Sequence record: KT895374.1
Direction: 5' to 3' (one strand)
Length of the DNA: 64,000 nucleotides
In this document: piece after piece, positions 1 through 41,476 of the stretch
Position numbering within the stretch: position 1 is the stretch's first letter
Layout: every line of letters starts with the position of its first letter
Translations under genes and position numbers: made by a program
The notes under the pieces: model-generated
The model's input: the letters and a program-made list of their open reading frames with translations, nothing else
Told to the model about the DNA's origin: nothing
Databases searched by the model: none

Positions 1-242
1 TAGTTTCCTATGAGATGAGACTATATCACTATCCTATATAAATAGGATAACTCCCATTTCCACTGTCAATCGCTTACAGTGTACTCTACTAACTTATTAA
101 TAATAAGCTTTCGATAGTCGTTGAACCTTCCTCTTTAAAGAGGCTTGGATGCTGATTTTCCAATTCTATTTAATAGAATCTAAGGAATTTCCAGCAGTTA
201 AGGAGTTTTGCATATAATATTACTATTATATGGCACGTACCC
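1..242 (-). mobile_element. Group I intron 4 of RNAP beta gene (3' end runs off the window)
   Basis: P1 GCAU|G..CGUGC with U.G pair at the 5' splice site; P3 ACUCCU/GGGAGU; P4 UGCUG/CAGCA; R motif GUUCAACGACUA; S motif UGAUAUAGUCU (P7 GACUA/UAGUC). Confidence 0.9.
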
Positions 243-275
243 ATGCTTCTGTTGCGTTGACTGCATGCCAATTCT
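243..275 (-). CDS. RNAP beta subunit exon 4 (33-nt micro-exon, RIGMQSTQQKH)
   Basis: Follows intron-terminal UAAUG at 276. Joined to exon 3 it gives HADPP-RIGMQSTQQKH, matching the beta HDD.NR..M...MQRQ region. Confidence 0.88.
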
Positions 276-572
276 CATTAATATTCTAATAGATTCGCTA
301 AATCTATCACGTTCTCTTATGAACTGCTTATGGTTATCCCATAAGATTAGACTATATCAAGATCCTATAAAGGATCCTTCCCATTTCCACTGTCAATCGC
401 TTACAGTGTACTCTACTAACTTATTAATAATAAGCTTTCGATAGTCGTTGAACTTTTCCTCTTAAAAGGAATTAGCTTCTGATTGTCTAAACTCTAATAA
501 TTAGAGTATAAAGATTTCCCAGAAATTAAGGAAGTTTCGACATACTATTACTAGTATGAAGCCCAGTTATTT
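276..572 (-). mobile_element. Group I intron 3 (297 nt, no ORF)
   Basis: P1 CCU|A..UGGG with U.G; P3 CUUCCU/GGGAAG; P4 UUCUG/CAGAA; R and S motifs present; ends UAAUG; restores the frame. Confidence 0.9.
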
Positions 573-723
573 AGGTGGATCGGCATGTCTTACGGTAAAG
601 GAACTTAATAGCTCTGCAGGTCCATAGATATTTGTTGAATCATTTTTTGTTTCGCTATTGGTATCTAAGAATCCTCTAGTATTAATAACACTTGGATCAT
701 AACTTAATTGTCGGACAACACCA
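573..723 (-). CDS. RNAP beta subunit exon 3 (151 nt)
   Basis: T + 50 codons: GVVRQLSYDPSVINTRGFLD...GPAELLSSFTVRHADPP, a beta-like conserved sequence. Confidence 0.9.
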
Positions 724-1020
724 CATTATTGTTCATATAGATACGCTACTACCTATACCGTCCAAAGGACTGCTTTAGATTTCTCTAAAGATCAGACTAT
801 ATCAAAATCCTATAATTAGGATTCCTCCCATTTCCACTGTCAATCGCTTACAGTGTACTCTACTAACTTATTAATAAGCTTTCGATAGTCGTTGAACTTT
901 TCCTCTTAAAAGGAATTAGCTTCTGATTGTCTAAATTATATTTATTTTATAATTATAAAGACTTCCCAGAAATTAGAGAGGTTTAGACATACTATTACTA
1001 GTATGAATGGCTATCAGTTA
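724..1020 (-). mobile_element. Group I intron 2 (297 nt, no ORF)
   Basis: P1 GGU|UA..UAGCC with U.G; P3 CCUCUC/GGGAGG; R and S motifs; ends UAAUG; core nearly identical to intron 3. Confidence 0.9.
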
Positions 1021-1161
1021 ACCTTGTCCGAATCTGGGGTACTAACAGAGAAAGTACCTACCATTGTTTTATCAAATGCACGAATTTCTTTTGTATAACT
1101 CATATCCTCATTCTGTCCTGAAAGACCTTTATAGGTAGATGCGCCAGTTTTTTCAATCTCA
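1021..1161 (-). CDS. RNAP beta subunit exon 2 (141 nt)
   Basis: T + 46 codons + GT: EIEKTGASTYKGLSGQNEDMSYTKEIRAFDKTMVGTFSVSTPDSDK(V), matching the beta R....GR.CP.ETPEG.N.G region. Confidence 0.9.
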
Positions 1162-1368
1162 CATTATCTTCTATTAGATACGCTACTATCTAATACGTCC
1201 TTAAAAGAACTGCTTTAGATTTCTCTAAAGTTGAGACTATATCATTATCCTATAAGGATACTTCCCGTTTCCCTTATCAATAGCTTATAAGGTACTCTAC
1301 TCACTCTATTTATTAATAGGCTTTCGATAGTCGTTGAACGTTAACTGTATTGAAAATAATAATCAGAT

Positions 1369-1377
1369 ATATATTAT
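1369..1377 (+). promoter_or_regulatory. ATATATTAT putative early (virion RNAP-type) promoter motif
   Basis: Same motif, in the correct orientation, is found upstream of other genes (see findings). Function is inferred. Confidence 0.5.
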
Positions 1378-1422
1378 AATTATGAAGTACAAAGAATTTT
1401 ATAGTAATGGAGGTATGCAACA

Positions 1423-1743
1423 ATGAGTGAAAAAGAAAAAATGTCCCTCGTTATTGATTATATCCTTAGTGAAAAAATGAAATCCGCTAAAGACGATCCT
1501 AAAAATGATGTCGTATACGATATAGCACTTAAATTCTTTAGACAAAGATTAAATGATGGATCTATGTCTACTATTAGAACTATAAAAGACTTTGCGACTT
1601 ATGGAAATGATTTTTATCTTCTAGACAAGCAAGATAAATCTGATTATAAAGATCATCTAAGCATTTGTAATAAGATAATTTATTTAGCTAGAGAAATTAA
1701 TAGTTACTATATCAATAAATTACCTAATGCTAGAGTTATCTGA
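1423..1743 (+). CDS. Hypothetical 106-aa protein encoded antisense inside intron 1
   Basis: SD GGAGG at 1409-1413, upstream promoter-like motif, downstream terminator; no HNH/GIY-YIG/LAGLIDADG motif seen. Confidence 0.8.
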   Translation: MSEKEKMSLVIDYILSEKMKSAKDDPKNDVVYDIALKFFRQRLNDGSMSTIRTIKDFATYGNDFYLLDKQDKSDYKDHLSICNKIIYLAREINSYYINKLPNARVI

Positions 1744-1753
1744 TTAAAAAGAG

Positions 1754-1783
1754 AATACCTTTCTATGAAGGGTATTTTTTTTT
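1754..1783 (+). terminator. Intrinsic terminator of the intron-embedded gene
   Basis: AATACCTTT/AAGGGTATT hairpin followed by a T run. Confidence 0.7.
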
Positions 1784-1897
1784 CAAATACAGTTATTCGC
1801 TTCTGATTGTCCAATTTTATTTAATTATAAAATCTAAGGAGTTTCCAGAAATTAGAGAAGTTTTCATTAAAATAAATTTAATGCCCCTGAATTGTTA

Positions 1898-4668
1898 AGG
1901 GATGGATTAAGAACTGAATACTCATCTACTGTAGGAGATTCTAACAATTGTTTAATTAGAATATCTCTAGGAACAGAAAGTTTAATAGGATTTCCTGCTT
2001 TTAACGTATCTTTATAAGTTTTAAATGAGTCTGCTAAAATTTTATAAAGATATGCGTTTACTTGTTCTGCACCTCTAACTCTATAAGAACTCATATCGTT
2101 AAGCTTAGTATGGGTACTATCTTCTAATAATGTATTTGCATAGAGAAGAATATCATAGATATGCTCTGGTAATTTTAACTGTTTTAAGACATCTAATGTT
2201 ATTGGATCTACCATTAATGAAATTGTATTATGGAATCCTTTACCTACATTTCGACTTCCGTATAATTCATTGAAAGTCTCAATATATGGATCAATTTCAT
2301 CAAATTCTTCAAAATCATACATTTCAGTAGCAATTACACTAAGACCACTAAGCAATAGTGAGTTTCTAATTTTAGAGTTATCATAATATAAGTAACCATT
2401 CTTAAATTTAATTCTATTATAATTACTTAATCCCATTTTTACTGCCTTAGTTTCAAATCTATATTCAATATCATATCGTTCTAATAATTTTGTTAAACCA
2501 ATTTCATAACCAAGTAAAACACCAATAGGAATTGTTTTATTATTAATCTTGACTCTTGTATAAGCAAGAGTTTTGGTATCAGAGAATTTCTTAAGAATAT
2601 CATATCCTTCATTACCATAGGCTTTAACAATATAGCTTAAAACTAATTCTGTTAAGTTTGGTGCTAAAGGATTAGCATTTTCCTTATCTAAAGAATAAAC
2701 CTTTTTATTATCATATTTAATTCCAATTAGATTAGTCTTATCCGAATTAAAACCTATAATTAGATAATCTTCAGTGTTATATTTGGAATTTGATTCTTTA
2801 ATTTCTCTCAATTTTTTTATTGAATCTAAGTCACTACTAATAGTTTTATTAATTTCATTTTGGTCAAATATTAATGTACCATTAGATGTTGTAATCTCAA
2901 GTAAGAATGATGAAAATTCATTGTATTCTAGAGTTGTTTTAGATGAAGCATTAATTGATAGAGCATTACCCAGTTTGTATTTAAATTTATCATCTTTTAC
3001 CTTTAATTCTTCTCTATCTTTCGTTCTAAAGAATTTTTTAATTCTTTCTGTCTTTTGAGATATTTTAGAACCAAATCTAGTAATAATAAATTTATTATAG
3101 TTTGTAGTTACTTGCACAGTATCAGGTTTTGTTTTAACAATAGGTAATAAGAATATTTGCTTAAGAATTAATTTTTTACCACCATTAATTCTCATAAATC
3201 TACCTTCTTGCATAATTGGGTAATCAAATTTGATACTATGTCTCGTATTATTTTCATCTTGGAAAGTTACAGAATAGGTAATTCTTTTTGTTAAATCATC
3301 AGAAGTATTTTCTGACTCAATATTAGTAATGTATAATTTAATATCAGAATCCCTATTGAAAGATGAAAGTACTGAAACTAAATCTCTCTTCATTTGTTTA
3401 TTATAATAAGATAAATCAAAATCTTTTAGATTAGACTTTCTAGTTTCGTCCATTATAACGTTTACATTTTCAATTATTTCGGTATCAATACTTGATGCCT
3501 TGAAACCATCAATAATATCCTGTATATTTTCCCCATCCAATTCAACTTTGGATTGAAGAGATTTCAGACGTTCAAGTACTTTATTTTCTTTAACCTCATC
3601 CCCACCAACAACTTGTAGGTCACTAACAGTTTTTAAATCAATTTTAATATTTTTATATTTATTTAATAATTCTATTAATTCTTCTTCAGATTTATTTTCA
3701 ATATCAACTTCTTTTGATAAAGTTTCTTTGATATCATCAGTTAGTTTTTCAATGGCTTCAGTAGTGTTTTTACTTAATTTGGTATTCTCATCAATATCTA
3801 ATTTTGATAGAAGTTTTTCTTTAACCTTATTAACTACTTCATCATTGCTATCAGGTGTTAATTCCGAATTGGATCCCTCTGATTCTTCCTCAGAACTGGG
3901 AAATTTAGAACCATCACCACCCTTAGATGTGTTTTGGTTGGCAATGTTAATTAAGTTTCTAATAGCACCTGCAAATCTATTGATTTTTTGTAAATCATTA
4001 ATTTTCTCATCAATCTTAATTGTTACAATTGATTCTTTTACAGGTGTATAGAATACTAAACTAATTCCCTTTAAAGCTTCAATATCAGAATTTGATAATA
4101 ATTTTCTTTTAATAGCCGCATAAAGATAGGCAAATGGATTATCTACTTTATTAAGATCGGCAAATGAACTATCTGTAATAGTATCTGGGATAGGAACTAA
4201 AATTGCTTTATTAGGATAAACAGTTTTAGAACCCTCATTTACTTTTTCAATTAAATATTGAATAAATAATTCAATTCTTCTCTTACCTCTTGATGGTATT
4301 TCAGCTTCATTTTCTAGCCACTGATCAGTAATATCATAAATTAGATTATATTTGTTATAATCTGGGATACTACGTTTCATCATTGTAATATTATTTGTAG
4401 CATTTTTTTGAATATAATCATAATATGCTTTCTGATCCACATAAATTCTTTTACCTTTATAAATAGAAGTAAACATACGTGGAACATATACTGCTTTAAA
4501 TGTTGTAGGGTGAATAATTTTTGTACTTAATAATTCACTAATATTCTCCCTTTTATTTCCGATTAGAAAAATCATATTTGATGATCTGTCACTTTTACTT
4601 TTAGTAATAGCATATATCGGTTTTTTTGATAAGACTTTTAATTCGCTCAAAGAATCGAGATAATGCAT
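1898..4668 (-). CDS. Multisubunit RNA polymerase beta-like subunit, exon 1 (probably virion RNAP)
   Basis: Motif GRFMRINGGKKLILKQIFLLP resembles the beta N-terminal F.ING.ERV.VSQL motif; continues through spliced exons; late-type promoter. The ORF-track tail NNSGALNLF is intron sequence. Confidence 0.85.
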
Positions 4669-4693
4669 TATTATATCCCTTCCTTTCTTATAA

Positions 4694-4705
4694 TATTATT
4701 ATGTT
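4694..4705 (-). promoter_or_regulatory. Late-type promoter AACA-N6-TA
   Basis: AACA TAATAA TA, matching the AR9 nvRNAP late consensus as recalled. Confidence 0.6.
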
Positions 4706-4761
4706 CGTGAAAATTATAAAAACAAAAAGAATAGATAAACTATTCTTTTTGTCCTTTAATA

Positions 4762-29847: not shown

Positions 29848-31025
29848 AAATATAGATTCATTTGAACTCCACCTTGCCCATTACTACCAAAATTAAGAGA
29901 AGAGACTGCTTTCATTAAACTATAATTGCCATCATATTCTTTATAGTTATCATTATAAAATTTTAATAAGAAATTGTTAATTGGGTTTATACTATTGATA
30001 TCTAAACCATCAACAGTTAATACAATATAAAAATCTTCATTTAATTTATTTGTTAATTCTTTTTCTTTTAATTCATTCTGATATTTATGATAATAGACTT
30101 TTGTTCTATATTTATCATCACCATAAAAATTTTTATTAAGTTTATTATCTGATTGAGAAATAATTAGATTTTCTGTTCCTAAAAATTCTTTACGGGAATC
30201 CTCATAACTAATTACTCTTAAACTAGATATATGTGAATTCACATTAAAAGTTCCGTCTTGATCCCTTTCAACTTCAATTAGTTCAGAGGAATCATTATCA
30301 TCTGAAAATATATTTATGAAGACATTTTCAGAGTATTCTTTTAATATCTCTTTATCCTTTATTAAGTGTTTATTAGTTATATAGTATCTGTTAATATCAA
30401 AAAATACTCTAATTCCACTGCTATAAATACCATATACTTCATTTAGATACTTTATAGCTAAAATTGGATTAAGCGGTGGAATGATTATTTGATCATAAAT
30501 CTTATTATTTTCAGGATACTCTATTATTAGATCTCTATCAGAAAAATATTTAGATATATAAGATATCATAGAATACATATCTGTTTCACTACCGACAGTA
30601 TTAATTAATTTCTTATTATTCTTTAATTCATCTTCTCCTATTAAAATAAATGAATTACTTAAAATTGGTAGTTCCTCATTACTAATATTATCGTTAGATG
30701 ATTCAGGTTTATTTATTAGATTTTTATTTCTATCAATAGGAGTAAATATTTTATTCTTAATAAAATAACTATATACAGTTCTAGAGTTATTAGCTAATAA
30801 TCGCTGTTCATATTTTTTTATAGTTAATGAAAATTTAACATTGCTACTGCTCTGAATATCATAATAACTATCAAAATCTAACTTAGTATACAATCGGATC
30901 ATAGGAAAAACTGCATTATCATACTCATTAATTATCTCAAACTTATTAATCATATTATCTAAAATAATTGGTTCTTTTTTATCCATTAAGACTTTACATT
31001 CTATTGAATATGATATATTTGCCAT
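29832..31025 (-). CDS. Hypothetical, possible baseplate-hub-like virion protein
   Basis: Start reassigned to MANISY with SD AGGAAGG; beta-rich sequence. Confidence 0.5.
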   Translation of the reverse strand: MANISYSIECKVLMDKKEPIILDNMINKFEIINEYDNAVFPMIRLYTKLDFDSYYDIQSSSNVKFSLTIKKYEQRLLANNSRTVYSYFIKNKIFTPIDRNKNLINKPESSNDNISNEELPILSNSFILIGEDELKNNKKLINTVGSETDMYSMISYISKYFSDRDLIIEYPENNKIYDQIIIPPLNPILAIKYLNEVYGIYSSGIRVFFDINRYYITNKHLIKDKEILKEYSENVFINIFSDDNDSSELIEVERDQDGTFNVNSHISSLRVISYEDSRKEFLGTENLIISQSDNKLNKNFYGDDKYRTKVYYHKYQNELKEKELTNKLNEDFYIVLTVDGLDINSINPINNFLLKFYNDNYKEYDGNYSLMKAVSSLNFGSNGQGGVQMNLYLKRKA

Positions 31026-39778: not shown

Positions 39779-41476
39779 TTAAAATTCTTGGACTGCAATA
39801 AATTGGTTACTTGTAGCTAATAATCCAATAATACTAAATGTAGTCTTCATAATTTCAATATCAGTCTTAGATGAATTGATTACATCTGTCTCATAAATAT
39901 CTTCATATTTATCAGTCTTTAAATTATAAATTTTATCCTCTTTAATACATGTATCAATAATTTTGTCTCGATTTTCAATATCATCCACATAACGATTATC
40001 TAAGACTTTCTCATAGGAATAGATAAATGAATTAGACAAGATTTGAAGAAATTGATAAAAAAAGGATTCTCTATCTGATTTATTTGTATGGACTCTTAAT
40101 AACTCTTTATCATTAATTAATTGATTAGCAATTTCAAAGAATTTATCTTCATCTCTAAGAATTCTAGGGATTGTTAAATTTCCACCTGCAACATAACCGA
40201 ATTTCAATGAAGATTTACAAGCATATACTGCATCCTCAAAAAGATACTTTCTAGTTTCTCTTTCCATATCACTTTTTCCACCAATATATAATGTGGCATT
40301 TTGACCTTCTAGATCAGCAATACGTTTTAAGAGTTTAAATTTATCAGAATCAGTATTAATGAATCTTTCTTTTTTATCTAACTCTTTAATTTCATTCTTA
40401 ATTAACTCAATTCTATCTTTTAAATCTTCTTTATTTCCTTTACCTTCAATAAGTTTAGTATCTGTTTCATTACAAATAAACTTTCCACAAGAACCTAAAT
40501 ATTCTTCTGGCTTTAGACCGACTGTTCTTGGATCTTCTTTATTATAAATAGTTGCCCCAAGATAAATTGCTAAATCCTCAAATGCACCCTCTGCATTTTT
40601 ATTTGTGATTGCATAGTCAATTGTAACTACTTCTGTTTTACTCTTCATTCTATTGAGCCTAAAAAAGTTAAATGCAGGTTCATCATAGCCTTTTGAGATA
40701 ACCACCAAAGGTCTTTGTAAAGATACTGCATGTTGGAGAACATTATAAAGTACACTATTAATTTCTTCTTCTTCTAATTTATTATTGGATAAGAAGATAA
40801 GTGGTGAATTATACCTGCATGTAATGTTGTCTTTTTCATTCGCATAAAGGGCTGACATGTAACCTCTTGCTAATTCAATACCATCAGAAATAGTATAATC
40901 ATCATATTCACTAGGAGAGTTTTCTAATGAAATAAATCCATCTCCACCAATTTCTTTATAAATGTTATAAATTAATTCACCAGCGGATTTATCATTATTA
41001 GTTGAAATAGAAGCAATTGATTTAATCTTTTCAAAATTATCTTTAGTAATTGGAGTAGATAATTCTTTAATTTCTTCCATTAAAATTCTTTCAATTCTAT
41101 TTAAAATGTCGATAATATCTTTACTAGGAATCTTATTAGCTTTCATAATTTTTTTCAGATTTCTATATAATGAGCCAGAAATCATAATTGCTGAAGTTGA
41201 TCCATCACCAACTTCTTTAACTAAGTTACGACTAGTTTTTTTAGTAATTTCTAAAATAGTGGATGCAACTCTATCAGAAAATTTAATTTTATCCAAAATA
41301 GAGTAACCATCTTTTGTAATTCTATGTTCGATAGTCATTGGATCTTGAAGGATAGTAGTAGAACCATAAGGTCCTAAACTCTTAGATAAAACATCAGTTA
41401 GTTTATCAAGAATACCCTCAATAATTTCTTCTGTTTTTTCCTCGTTTAATACATTACTTCTAATCTCAATAGTCAT
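39779..41476 (-). CDS. GroEL-like phage chaperonin
   Basis: LGPYGST, ITKDGYSIL, VGDGSTSA, GYVAGG. Confidence 0.93.
   Translation of the reverse strand: MTIEIRSNVLNEEKTEEIIEGILDKLTDVLSKSLGPYGSTTILQDPMTIEHRITKDGYSILDKIKFSDRVASTILEITKKTSRNLVKEVGDGSTSAIMISGSLYRNLKKIMKANKIPSKDIIDILNRIERILMEEIKELSTPITKDNFEKIKSIASISTNNDKSAGELIYNIYKEIGGDGFISLENSPSEYDDYTISDGIELARGYMSALYANEKDNITCRYNSPLIFLSNNKLEEEEINSVLYNVLQHAVSLQRPLVVISKGYDEPAFNFFRLNRMKSKTEVVTIDYAITNKNAEGAFEDLAIYLGATIYNKEDPRTVGLKPEEYLGSCGKFICNETDTKLIEGKGNKEDLKDRIELIKNEIKELDKKERFINTDSDKFKLLKRIADLEGQNATLYIGGKSDMERETRKYLFEDAVYACKSSLKFGYVAGGNLTIPRILRDEDKFFEIANQLINDKELLRVHTNKSDRESFFYQFLQILSNSFIYSYEKVLDNRYVDDIENRDKIIDTCIKEDKIYNLKTDKYEDIYETDVINSSKTDIEIMKTTFSIIGLLATSNQFIAVQEF

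Follow-up and report, generated by a model that had tools for sequence, protein, structure and literature searches.

Introduction

Why does a group I intron in a polymerase gene of a phage carry, on its opposite strand, what looks like a gene with a promoter and a terminator of its own? The question is raised by intron D, 736 nt long and situated on the minus strand (positions 1162-1897) of a stretch of 64,000 bases, here called the window, which corresponds to positions 191570-255569 of record KT895374, the genome of Bacillus phage vB_BpuM-BpSp (BpSp). Over bases 1-4700 the window does not differ from BpSp, and its first 431 bases are record positions 191570-192000. BpSp belongs to the genus Takahashivirus in the PBS1/AR9 group, which are uracil-DNA jumbo phages with two multisubunit RNA polymerases (RNAPs), and the gene that intron D interrupts encodes a beta-like subunit of the virion RNAP. 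An earlier note on this DNA had pointed to an insertion in the intron with an open reading frame (ORF) on the other strand. We consider it likely that the P6a loop of intron D houses an autonomous early gene on the opposite strand. The anatomy of the locus, the identities of its motifs, the lack of nuclease features, the recurrence of the layout and the selection on an analogous cargo were established directly, and they carry the argument below.

Intron D and its enlarged P6a loop

The Rfam family RF00028 finds three sibling introns of the same gene, A, B and C, on the minus strand at 66-77 bits. With relaxed thresholds intron D appears as two pieces only, at 1213-1312 and 1762-1850, which flank the insert, and the better of them scores 35.7 bits. 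The intact intron misses the gathering score (a single match of at least 50 bits) because the insert of 434 nt breaks the alignment. Without its loop, intron D aligned end to end with introns A-C at 73-75% identity and formed 63 of the 70 consensus pairs. It has the same Q, R and P7' elements as its siblings, and it has P7.1 and P7.2, as in introns of the phage type, with compensatory changes in both. Since the core aligns and its pairs are kept in this way, intron D is, as far as its features can be read, a complete group I intron with an enlarged P6a, and it is predicted to be self-splicing.

The limits of the intron, as given by the Rfam pieces, the alignment of the core and the joining of the exons, are in agreement with this. 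The 5' splice site follows U1898 (CCCU/UAAC, the slash marking the site), where the CCCU of P1 pairs with GGGG and gives the U-G pair at the splice site, and the 3' end is AUAAUG with the terminal G at 1162. When exons 1 and 2 are joined they read NPSL/EIEK and the reading frame is restored. NPSLEIEK runs on without a break in PBS1, Internexus, AR9 and four uncultured loci, so intron D and its ORF are confined to BpSp among the relatives where the junction motif could be located.

On one side of the insert is the Q element GACAATCAGAAGC and on the other the R element TTCAACGACTATCG, and the Rfam structure line shows the P6/P6a hairpin at that place. In the sibling introns the hairpin here is about 16 nt long, and intron D has a loop of 434 nt (1352-1785). 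It is closed by two arms, TAACTGTATT at 1342-1351 and AATACAGTTA at 1786-1795, that are exact reverse complements of each other and pair in the minus-strand RNA as an exact 10-bp helix (duplex energy -14.4 kcal/mol), which extends to 22 nt at 82%; the first arm overlaps the upstream promoter element described below. The earlier note had given an insertion of about 430 nt with a 10-bp stem, and its coordinates hold. The GC content of the insert is 25.8% against 26.3% for the window, and it thus lacks the atypical composition that would point to a foreign origin. A tree of the 3' halves of the introns was to show whether those with a cargo form one lineage; in it only an intron at 138.6 kb of the record and intron E, both treated below, were grouped (93/96), and the other branches were unresolved.

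The probable gene in the loop and its predicted protein

The ORF in the loop runs on the plus strand from ATG at 1423 to TGA at 1743 (106 aa, 12.5 kDa, pI 8.6), is annotated as the hypothetical protein gp249, and is preceded by a Shine-Dalgarno sequence (SD), GGAGG at 1409-1413, that was read directly and lies 9 nt before the ATG. An ORF of at least 106 codons was found in one of 5000 dinucleotide shuffles of the 434-nt insert (p ~2e-4). The in-frame codon score is 0.30 bits/codon, within the range of 0.19-0.56 of the long genes in the window, and the other five frames score between -0.5 and -2.0.

The protein has no known kin. A tblastn search against 50,697 phage records gave BpSp alone, HMMER against 1.84 billion representative sequences returned only the protein itself (its 90% cluster has one member), and there was no match in Pfam, PHROG, PADLOC or the sequences of the PDB. 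NCBIfam gave a weak match to an unrelated family of type I toxins (E = 0.061), which at 13.7 bits lay below the cut-off of 60 and was rejected as noise. Pairwise BLASTP among gp249, two other BpSp intron proteins (gp247 and gp190), the intron ORF of the uncultured locus L010, and AR9 g170 and AR9 g171, which are neighbours of g169, did not give any matches either. The AlphaFold model, calculated with a single sequence as input, is a four-helix bundle with pLDDT 74 and pTM 0.68. Foldseek with this model found nothing significant in the PDB (best E = 0.74), and BFVD gave the protein's own model only (TM 0.78). Bromodomain-like Foldseek matches (E of 0.7 or higher) were rejected as generic four-helix bundles.

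Intron ORFs usually encode endonucleases, antisense endonuclease genes with promoters of their own exist (PMC3073962), and the presence of intron D in BpSp only would fit with recent mobility. One could thus imagine that gp249 is a novel or degenerate antisense homing endonuclease, or an accessory mobility factor, comparable to I-DirII. But no motif or profile of a homing endonuclease (LAGLIDADG, HNH, GIY-YIG, His-Cys box, PD-(D/E)xK or EDxHD) and no nuclease fold could be found in gp249, which is all-helical and has one histidine and one cysteine, and two endonucleases of BpSp used as controls, gp149 and gp156, were recognised in the profile searches. With no nuclease family, motif or fold, gp249 shows no sign of being a homing endonuclease or a fragment of one, which bears out what the earlier note had said of its motifs; the best structural match is to a generic helical bundle. 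The recognisable endonucleases of BpSp are furthermore all encoded on the sense strand, and gp246, a sister cargo in another intron, is homologous to a free-standing early gene. We therefore regard an endonuclease in this loop as extremely improbable. From its modelled structure gp249 is a predicted helical protein, neither homing endonuclease nor maturase, and we assume that it is an accessory early factor.

A predicted early promoter on the opposite strand

The expression of the gene in the loop can be judged against AR9, where 41 early start sites have been mapped with the consensus AAATATATATTAT-(6N)-G (Lavysh et al. 2017, PMC5312081). Early transcription in AR9 does not need protein synthesis and is for that reason credited to the virion RNAP that is injected with the genome (PMC5312081). 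The loop has a 13-mer, AGATATATATTAT, on the plus strand at 1365-1377 that agrees with the AR9 consensus at 12 of 13 positions and is identical to that of P087, a mapped, chloramphenicol-insensitive promoter of AR9. P087 is listed in Table S2 as ...AGATATATATTAT-aaaaaa-G and is among the directly verified promoters (PMC5312081). With the spacing rule from the same study, transcription is predicted to start at the G at 1384 (plus strand), which stands 6 nt (AATTAT) past the 13-mer and gives a leader of 39 nt. The earlier note had seen the promoter-like ATATATTAT at 1369-1377, together with the SD, the ORF and the terminator, and all of them are where it had placed them, although the promoter is longer and more specific than that, consisting of the 13-mer, the N6-G and an upstream element.

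The same signals recur in the genome. There are 19 exact 13-mers in BpSp and N6-G comes next in 18 of them; each of the four exact sites in the window lies between genes, on the correct strand and at a distance of 33-103 nt from the annotated gene that it precedes. A second element, (C/T)GTAT(T/C)(G/A)AA, is placed at a fixed distance of 10 nt upstream of the 13-mer in eight of about 32 early-promoter sites in BpSp, namely at 1345-1354 in the window and at record positions 30787, 61673, 85676, 105780, 138705, 179964 and 246499. In the cassette it reads CTGTATTGAA (1345-1354, plus strand, 10 nt 5' of the 13-mer), identical to the element at 105780, and judged by eye it is present in about nine of the 41 mapped early promoters of AR9. 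In one AR9 gene, g190, the upstream element overlaps the Q/P6 strand of the intron.

A sigma-A-like sequence, TTGAAA-16-TATTAT at 1350-1377 (plus strand), coincides with the phage early promoter and fits 10 of the 12 positions of a sigma-70-type consensus. The unit could thus be real but be read by the sigma-A RNA polymerase of the host instead of by the virion polymerase. Such matches are however no more frequent in this AT-rich DNA than expected (27 against an expectation of 34.5), the 13-mer, the spacing, the G and the upstream element of the phage are all present, and infection by PBS2 and AR9 is rifampicin-resistant. The chance that the host enzyme is the one that reads the cassette seems very slim to us.

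Another idea is that the insert is an inert relic, with an untranslated ORF or an unused promoter, that persists only because the P6 loop tolerates extra sequence. In favour of it, gp249 is an orphan for which there is no comparative support, and deviations of a single base can silence early promoters in AR9. Against it, none of the parts (upstream element, 13-mer, N6-G, SD, ORF and terminator) is damaged and together they fit the loop exactly, the ORF is longer than chance would give and has a codon score typical of genes, and the single deviation of the 13-mer is that of an active AR9 promoter. A relic is in our opinion quite improbable.

AR9 has a precedent for an early gene that lies within a late one. 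The orthologue of the host gene, g189, is late, with RNA-seq values (FPKM) of 0/24/390 at 5/20/40 min, and g190, located in one of its introns and with an early start site that has been mapped, gives 291/406/427 at the same times (PMC5312081). The two cases are alike in that the gene is an orthologous late gene, interrupted by a group I intron with an ORF just past the Q/P6 strand, and in that this ORF has its own early promoter of the AAATATATATTAT type. They differ in that g190 encodes an HNH-AP2 homing endonuclease on the sense strand, the strand of the intron, and in that both the intron and its site are other ones; gp249 is encoded on the opposite strand, has a terminator of its own and is not an endonuclease. 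In BpSp the host gene has the late motif AACA-(6N)-TA 26 nt upstream of its ATG, the same as in g189. The proposal of the earlier note, an early cargo in a late gene, is thus consistent with the P087 13-mer, with the late motif of the host gene and with the timing of g189 and g190.

The terminator and the orientation of the cassette

Downstream of the ORF, at 1747-1783 on the plus strand, there is an intrinsic terminator, a 17-bp hairpin in which a run of nine U is included (-16.1 kcal/mol, z = -4.4). It was found by folding, as a simple terminator scan did not pick it up, and predicted terminators have been shown to work in AR9. The U run ends two bases before the second arm of the closing helix, and the cassette occupies the P6a loop almost exactly. 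Read on the minus strand the hairpin has an energy of just -8.3 kcal/mol, because G-U pairs turn into A-C mismatches there, and the U run is interrupted.

This suggests a reason for the orientation. A terminator in the sense orientation would truncate the mRNA of an essential gene, so a cassette of this kind would be tolerated in the opposite orientation only, and it is probably the opposite orientation that lets a terminator-bearing cassette reside in such a gene. Within 80 nt downstream of the two sense-strand endonuclease ORFs of BpSp, gp149 and gp156, no terminator is evident, which is in line with this idea of polarity.

Other introns with the same layout

The earlier note had treated the arrangement as unique, which it is not, as gp249 is one of four opposite-strand intron ORFs in BpSp. 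By a count of Q/R/P7' motifs the genome has 14 group I introns, of which five lie in the polymerase gene and five have ORFs. The opposite-strand ORFs, gp249, gp190, gp247 and gp246, are distributed over three introns, and none of them is a recognisable nuclease. On the sense strand there are gp149, with treble-clef zinc fingers, CapR and DUF2726 (phrog_559), and gp156, a LAGLIDADG_2 protein. Each of these two is preceded by AACA-N6-TA, the late consensus of AR9 (record 110.6 and 117.2 kb; L008 12629 and 19233).

The orphan gp190 (123 aa) is encoded on the opposite strand of a group I intron (record 138.56-139.14 kb; L008 ~40560-41140), in its P6 loop, and the gene that this intron interrupts is prohead protease/scaffold-like. 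Its early promoter is a perfect AAATATATATTAT-AAAAAA-G with the upstream element ACGTATTGAA; there is no terminator inside the loop, and the stop codon of gp190 abuts the Q element. Intron E, the fifth intron of the polymerase gene, is placed just outside the window (record 189.6-191.3 kb; L001 ~1163-2787) and has two opposite-strand ORFs, gp247 (112 aa) in the P6 loop, with a weaker promoter match, and gp246 (306 aa) in the P7.1 loop, whose first 100 nt of upstream sequence showed neither an early nor a late promoter motif. The latter is homologous to AR9 g169 (28.6% identity, E = 9e-19) and is the sole copy in BpSp. In AR9, g169 is free-standing with a mapped early start and FPKM values of 258/166/136 (PMC5312081). 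That gp246 is homologous to a free-standing early gene is the strongest indication that intron loops house ordinary early genes.

A search with the end of exon 1 led to a lineage of uncultured relatives (L010, L012, L013 and L016, and the short contigs L017 and L018) in which the polymerase gene is without intron D, and at least in L010 introns C, B and A are absent as well. The comparison with relatives proposed in the earlier note thus gave two results, that intron D is missing from them and that the same layout is found at the E site of this lineage. The intron at that site is present, with a P6 loop closed by a 13-bp helix, and on the opposite strand of the loop there is (A/G)AGTATATATTAT-AATTAT-G, an SD, an ORF of 125/126 aa and a terminator, GAGACC...GGTCTC-T9-11. 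By pairwise BLASTP the ORF is unrelated to gp249, and the AlphaFold model of its protein has a low pLDDT of 38. Three variants of this cargo (100%, 87% and 66% protein identity) hardly differ in intron core, promoter, SD and terminator, and the ORF has diverged but is still open. Its dN/dS is 0.24-0.32 at a dS of 0.27-0.63, calculated with more distant orthologues from a protein search, the loci of L010, L012 and L013 being 99.5-99.9% alike. In at least one case the antisense cargo of a P6 loop is therefore protein-coding and under purifying selection.

While the dS of the cargo at the E site is 0.27-0.63, the core of the intron is about 98-99% identical (L010 2020-2900; L016 5700-6500; L017). 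Either the cargo evolves much more quickly than the intron around it, or something such as homing keeps the intron uniform. In L012, at ~1410-2500, there is an intron at the B site with a sense-strand zinc-finger endonuclease ORF, whose presence or absence differs from L010 and L013 although these are 99.5-99.9% alike, the pattern expected of an actively mobile intron. Over the BpSp genome and L010-L016 the split in orientation is strict. The non-endonuclease intron ORFs are antisense in five cases out of five, and the recognisable endonuclease ORFs, which are gp149, gp156, AR9 g190 and the zinc-finger ORFs in L012 and L016, are all sense.

How the cassette may be used

We infer the timing, the ends of the transcript and the role of the cassette as follows. 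Just after infection the injected virion RNAP, directed by CTGTATTGAA-N10-AGATATATATTAT-N6, would start at G1384 and proceed to the hairpin-U9 terminator at 1747-1783, giving a monocistronic mRNA of about 400 nt. This mRNA would be translated from GGAGG/ATG1423 to the predicted 12.5-kDa helical protein. Late in infection the non-virion polymerase would read the other strand from AACA-N6-TA at 4705-4694, and in the late pre-mRNA the cassette would fold as a long P6a loop, with the 10-bp helix closing it, and would be spliced out as part of the intron. The P6a loop may in that case be a tolerated site in a densely packed genome, and the cassette gene an ordinary, fast-evolving accessory early gene.

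Several points weigh against such an autonomous early gene. For the virion RNAP of AR9, a sensitivity to single deviations from the consensus has been reported, and g057, with one change, is inactive (PMC5312081); the one deviation of the cassette promoter is however the same as in the active P087. No homologue of gp249 is available, so the support from selection comes from an analogous ORF and not from gp249 itself, and the structure model was built from one sequence. Finally, both the view of the loop as a safe harbour and the account of the orientation in terms of terminator polarity are things that we infer.

It is also conceivable that the antisense RNA is the main product, pairing with the late beta pre-mRNA and delaying its splicing or triggering cleavage of double-stranded RNA (dsRNA), with the ORF as something secondary. 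The predicted transcript could pair over its full length with about 400 nt of the intron, and as early transcripts in AR9 last to 40 min, early and late RNAs could coexist. AR9 has antisense transcripts, and in phage S-PM2 an antisense RNA spans psbA and a homing-endonuclease gene. However, the predicted RNA (1384 to ~1783) is complementary to the loop only and not to P3-P9 or the splice sites, and the other cassettes vary in length and extent, so that no common RNA target is evident. Moreover, the gp249 ORF has a good SD, uses codons as phage genes do and is longer than chance would readily produce, and the analogous ORF of the uncultured relatives is under purifying selection as a protein. 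We find it improbable that the RNA is what the cassette is for, and the modulation of splicing that the earlier note had put forward as a possible effect of it finds no support here.

A related but broader proposal is that the group I introns of this lineage carry opposite-strand cassettes in an arrangement that is functional and not just tolerated. Early antisense transcription via the P6 loop could possibly gate the maturation of the late mRNA of the virion polymerase, by dsRNA or by a delay of splicing. Another possibility is a mutualism, where the useful cargo guards the intron from loss and the selfish ribozyme is kept for a gene that is needed. The strict split between sense and antisense, with five of five non-endonuclease ORFs antisense, fits a rule better than an accident, but we still consider a functional arrangement of this kind rather unlikely. 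An autonomous early gene that the loop simply tolerates is the explanation that we prefer.

The host gene and its surroundings

The splice map of the host gene was set by alignment to proteins of PBS1 and to uncultured relatives whose gene has no interruption at these sites. An N-terminal ORF at 1867-4668 on the minus strand identifies the gene (phrog_38251, 1881 bits), BpSp gp250 is 54% identical to PBS1 gp80, and the AR9 orthologue is annotated as a virion-RNAP subunit in six joined pieces. All parts of the gene are on the minus strand. Exon 1 (gp250; phrog_38251, PBS1 gp80) covers 1898-4668 and is followed, after intron D, by exon 2 at 1021-1161 and, after intron C at 724-1020, by exon 3 at 573-723, both exons defined by homologue alignment. 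Intron C (Rfam 76.9 bits, match 773-1030) and intron B at 276-572 (66.4 bits, match 327-582) have no ORF. Between introns B and A there is an exon 4 of 33 nt at 243-275, which encodes RIGMQSTQQKH and was defined by the uninterrupted homologues in L010 and PBS1. An exon of 11 nt at this place was rejected, as it gives a frame problem and the homologues in L010 and PBS1 give 33 nt. Intron A (1-242; Rfam 70.1 bits, match 1-274) continues past the start of the window and is complete in the BpSp record; the Rfam alignment of it wrongly takes exon 4 into P1.

The late-promoter motif of the gene, AACA-N6-TA according to the consensus from PMC5312081, is at 4694-4705 on the minus strand and leaves a leader of 26 nt. 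Directly upstream of it, at 4718-4756, there is a hairpin of 13-17 bp with T runs on both strands, the shape of a bidirectional terminator. In the public BpSp record no introns are annotated; the beta gene is given as the separate coding sequences (CDSs) gp250, gp248 and gp245, and exons 2-4 are unannotated.

Significance and comparison with known systems

The ORFs of phage group I introns have been treated as homing endonucleases, and here the loops in essential late genes hold what are probably ordinary early genes on the opposite strand, with promoters and, in at least two cases, a terminator of their own. If expression is confirmed, the loops of ribozymes would be insertion-tolerant sites for the gain of genes in dense viral genomes, and the cassettes a concrete case of how the relation between intron and host shifts from parasitism towards mutual benefit. 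They would also offer a natural test of the regulatory effects of convergent early and late transcription within one gene. The public annotation of BpSp, with no introns listed and the beta gene split into unrelated-looking CDSs, would have to be corrected, and P6a would be marked as a permissive site for engineering cargo into such phages.

For antisense intron ORFs with a promoter of their own, the literature searched gave a single example, the endonuclease I-DirII of Didymium; intron genes other than endonucleases turned up in organelles only, and among phages one antisense RNA in the neighbourhood of an intron, that of S-PM2, came to light. A search that did not include the BpSp genome paper found no group I intron of a phage described as carrying early genes that are on the opposite strand and are not endonucleases.

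The phage introns in td, nrdB and sunY of T4 also carry ORFs in peripheral loops, and these are expressed from promoters of their own on a schedule that differs from that of the host gene; those ORFs are however on the sense strand and encode GIY-YIG or HNH endonucleases. In its make-up the cassette resembles the morons of phages, which are units of promoter, gene and terminator inserted between conserved genes. With its own promoter and terminator and its absence from the relatives it has the marks of a moron, being self-contained with promoter, ORF and terminator, missing in close relatives and, by prediction, expressed independently of its neighbours. It is unlike them in that it lies in the ribozyme loop of an essential gene, has a typical base composition and belongs to a lytic jumbo phage with its own polymerases.

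The rps3 gene in the rnl intron of fungal mitochondria (PMC8393795) is like the BpSp case in that a group I intron houses a gene that is neither a homing endonuclease nor a maturase, but it is organellar and not viral, and there is no temporal uncoupling. Organellar intron genes of this kind are not known to lie on any strand but the sense strand, and their expression goes with the host transcript or comes from it. I-DirII, in a ribosomal DNA (rDNA) intron of Didymium iridis, shares the antisense ORF in a group I intron and the promoter of its own; it differs by being in eukaryotic nuclear rDNA, where Pol II reads its promoter and the transcript has a spliceosomal intron as well as a poly(A) tail, and by having a homing endonuclease as its product (PMC3073962). 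CfrI of cyanophage S-PM2 is likewise an example of antisense transcription in a lytic phage, over a locus with a group I intron and a homing endonuclease, but it is a non-coding RNA of about 225 nt that spans a gene and the endonuclease gene (PMC2984593), whereas the antisense transcript in BpSp is a predicted mRNA within the loop of an intron. The gp249 cassette is thus best filed as a new combination of elements that are known one by one.

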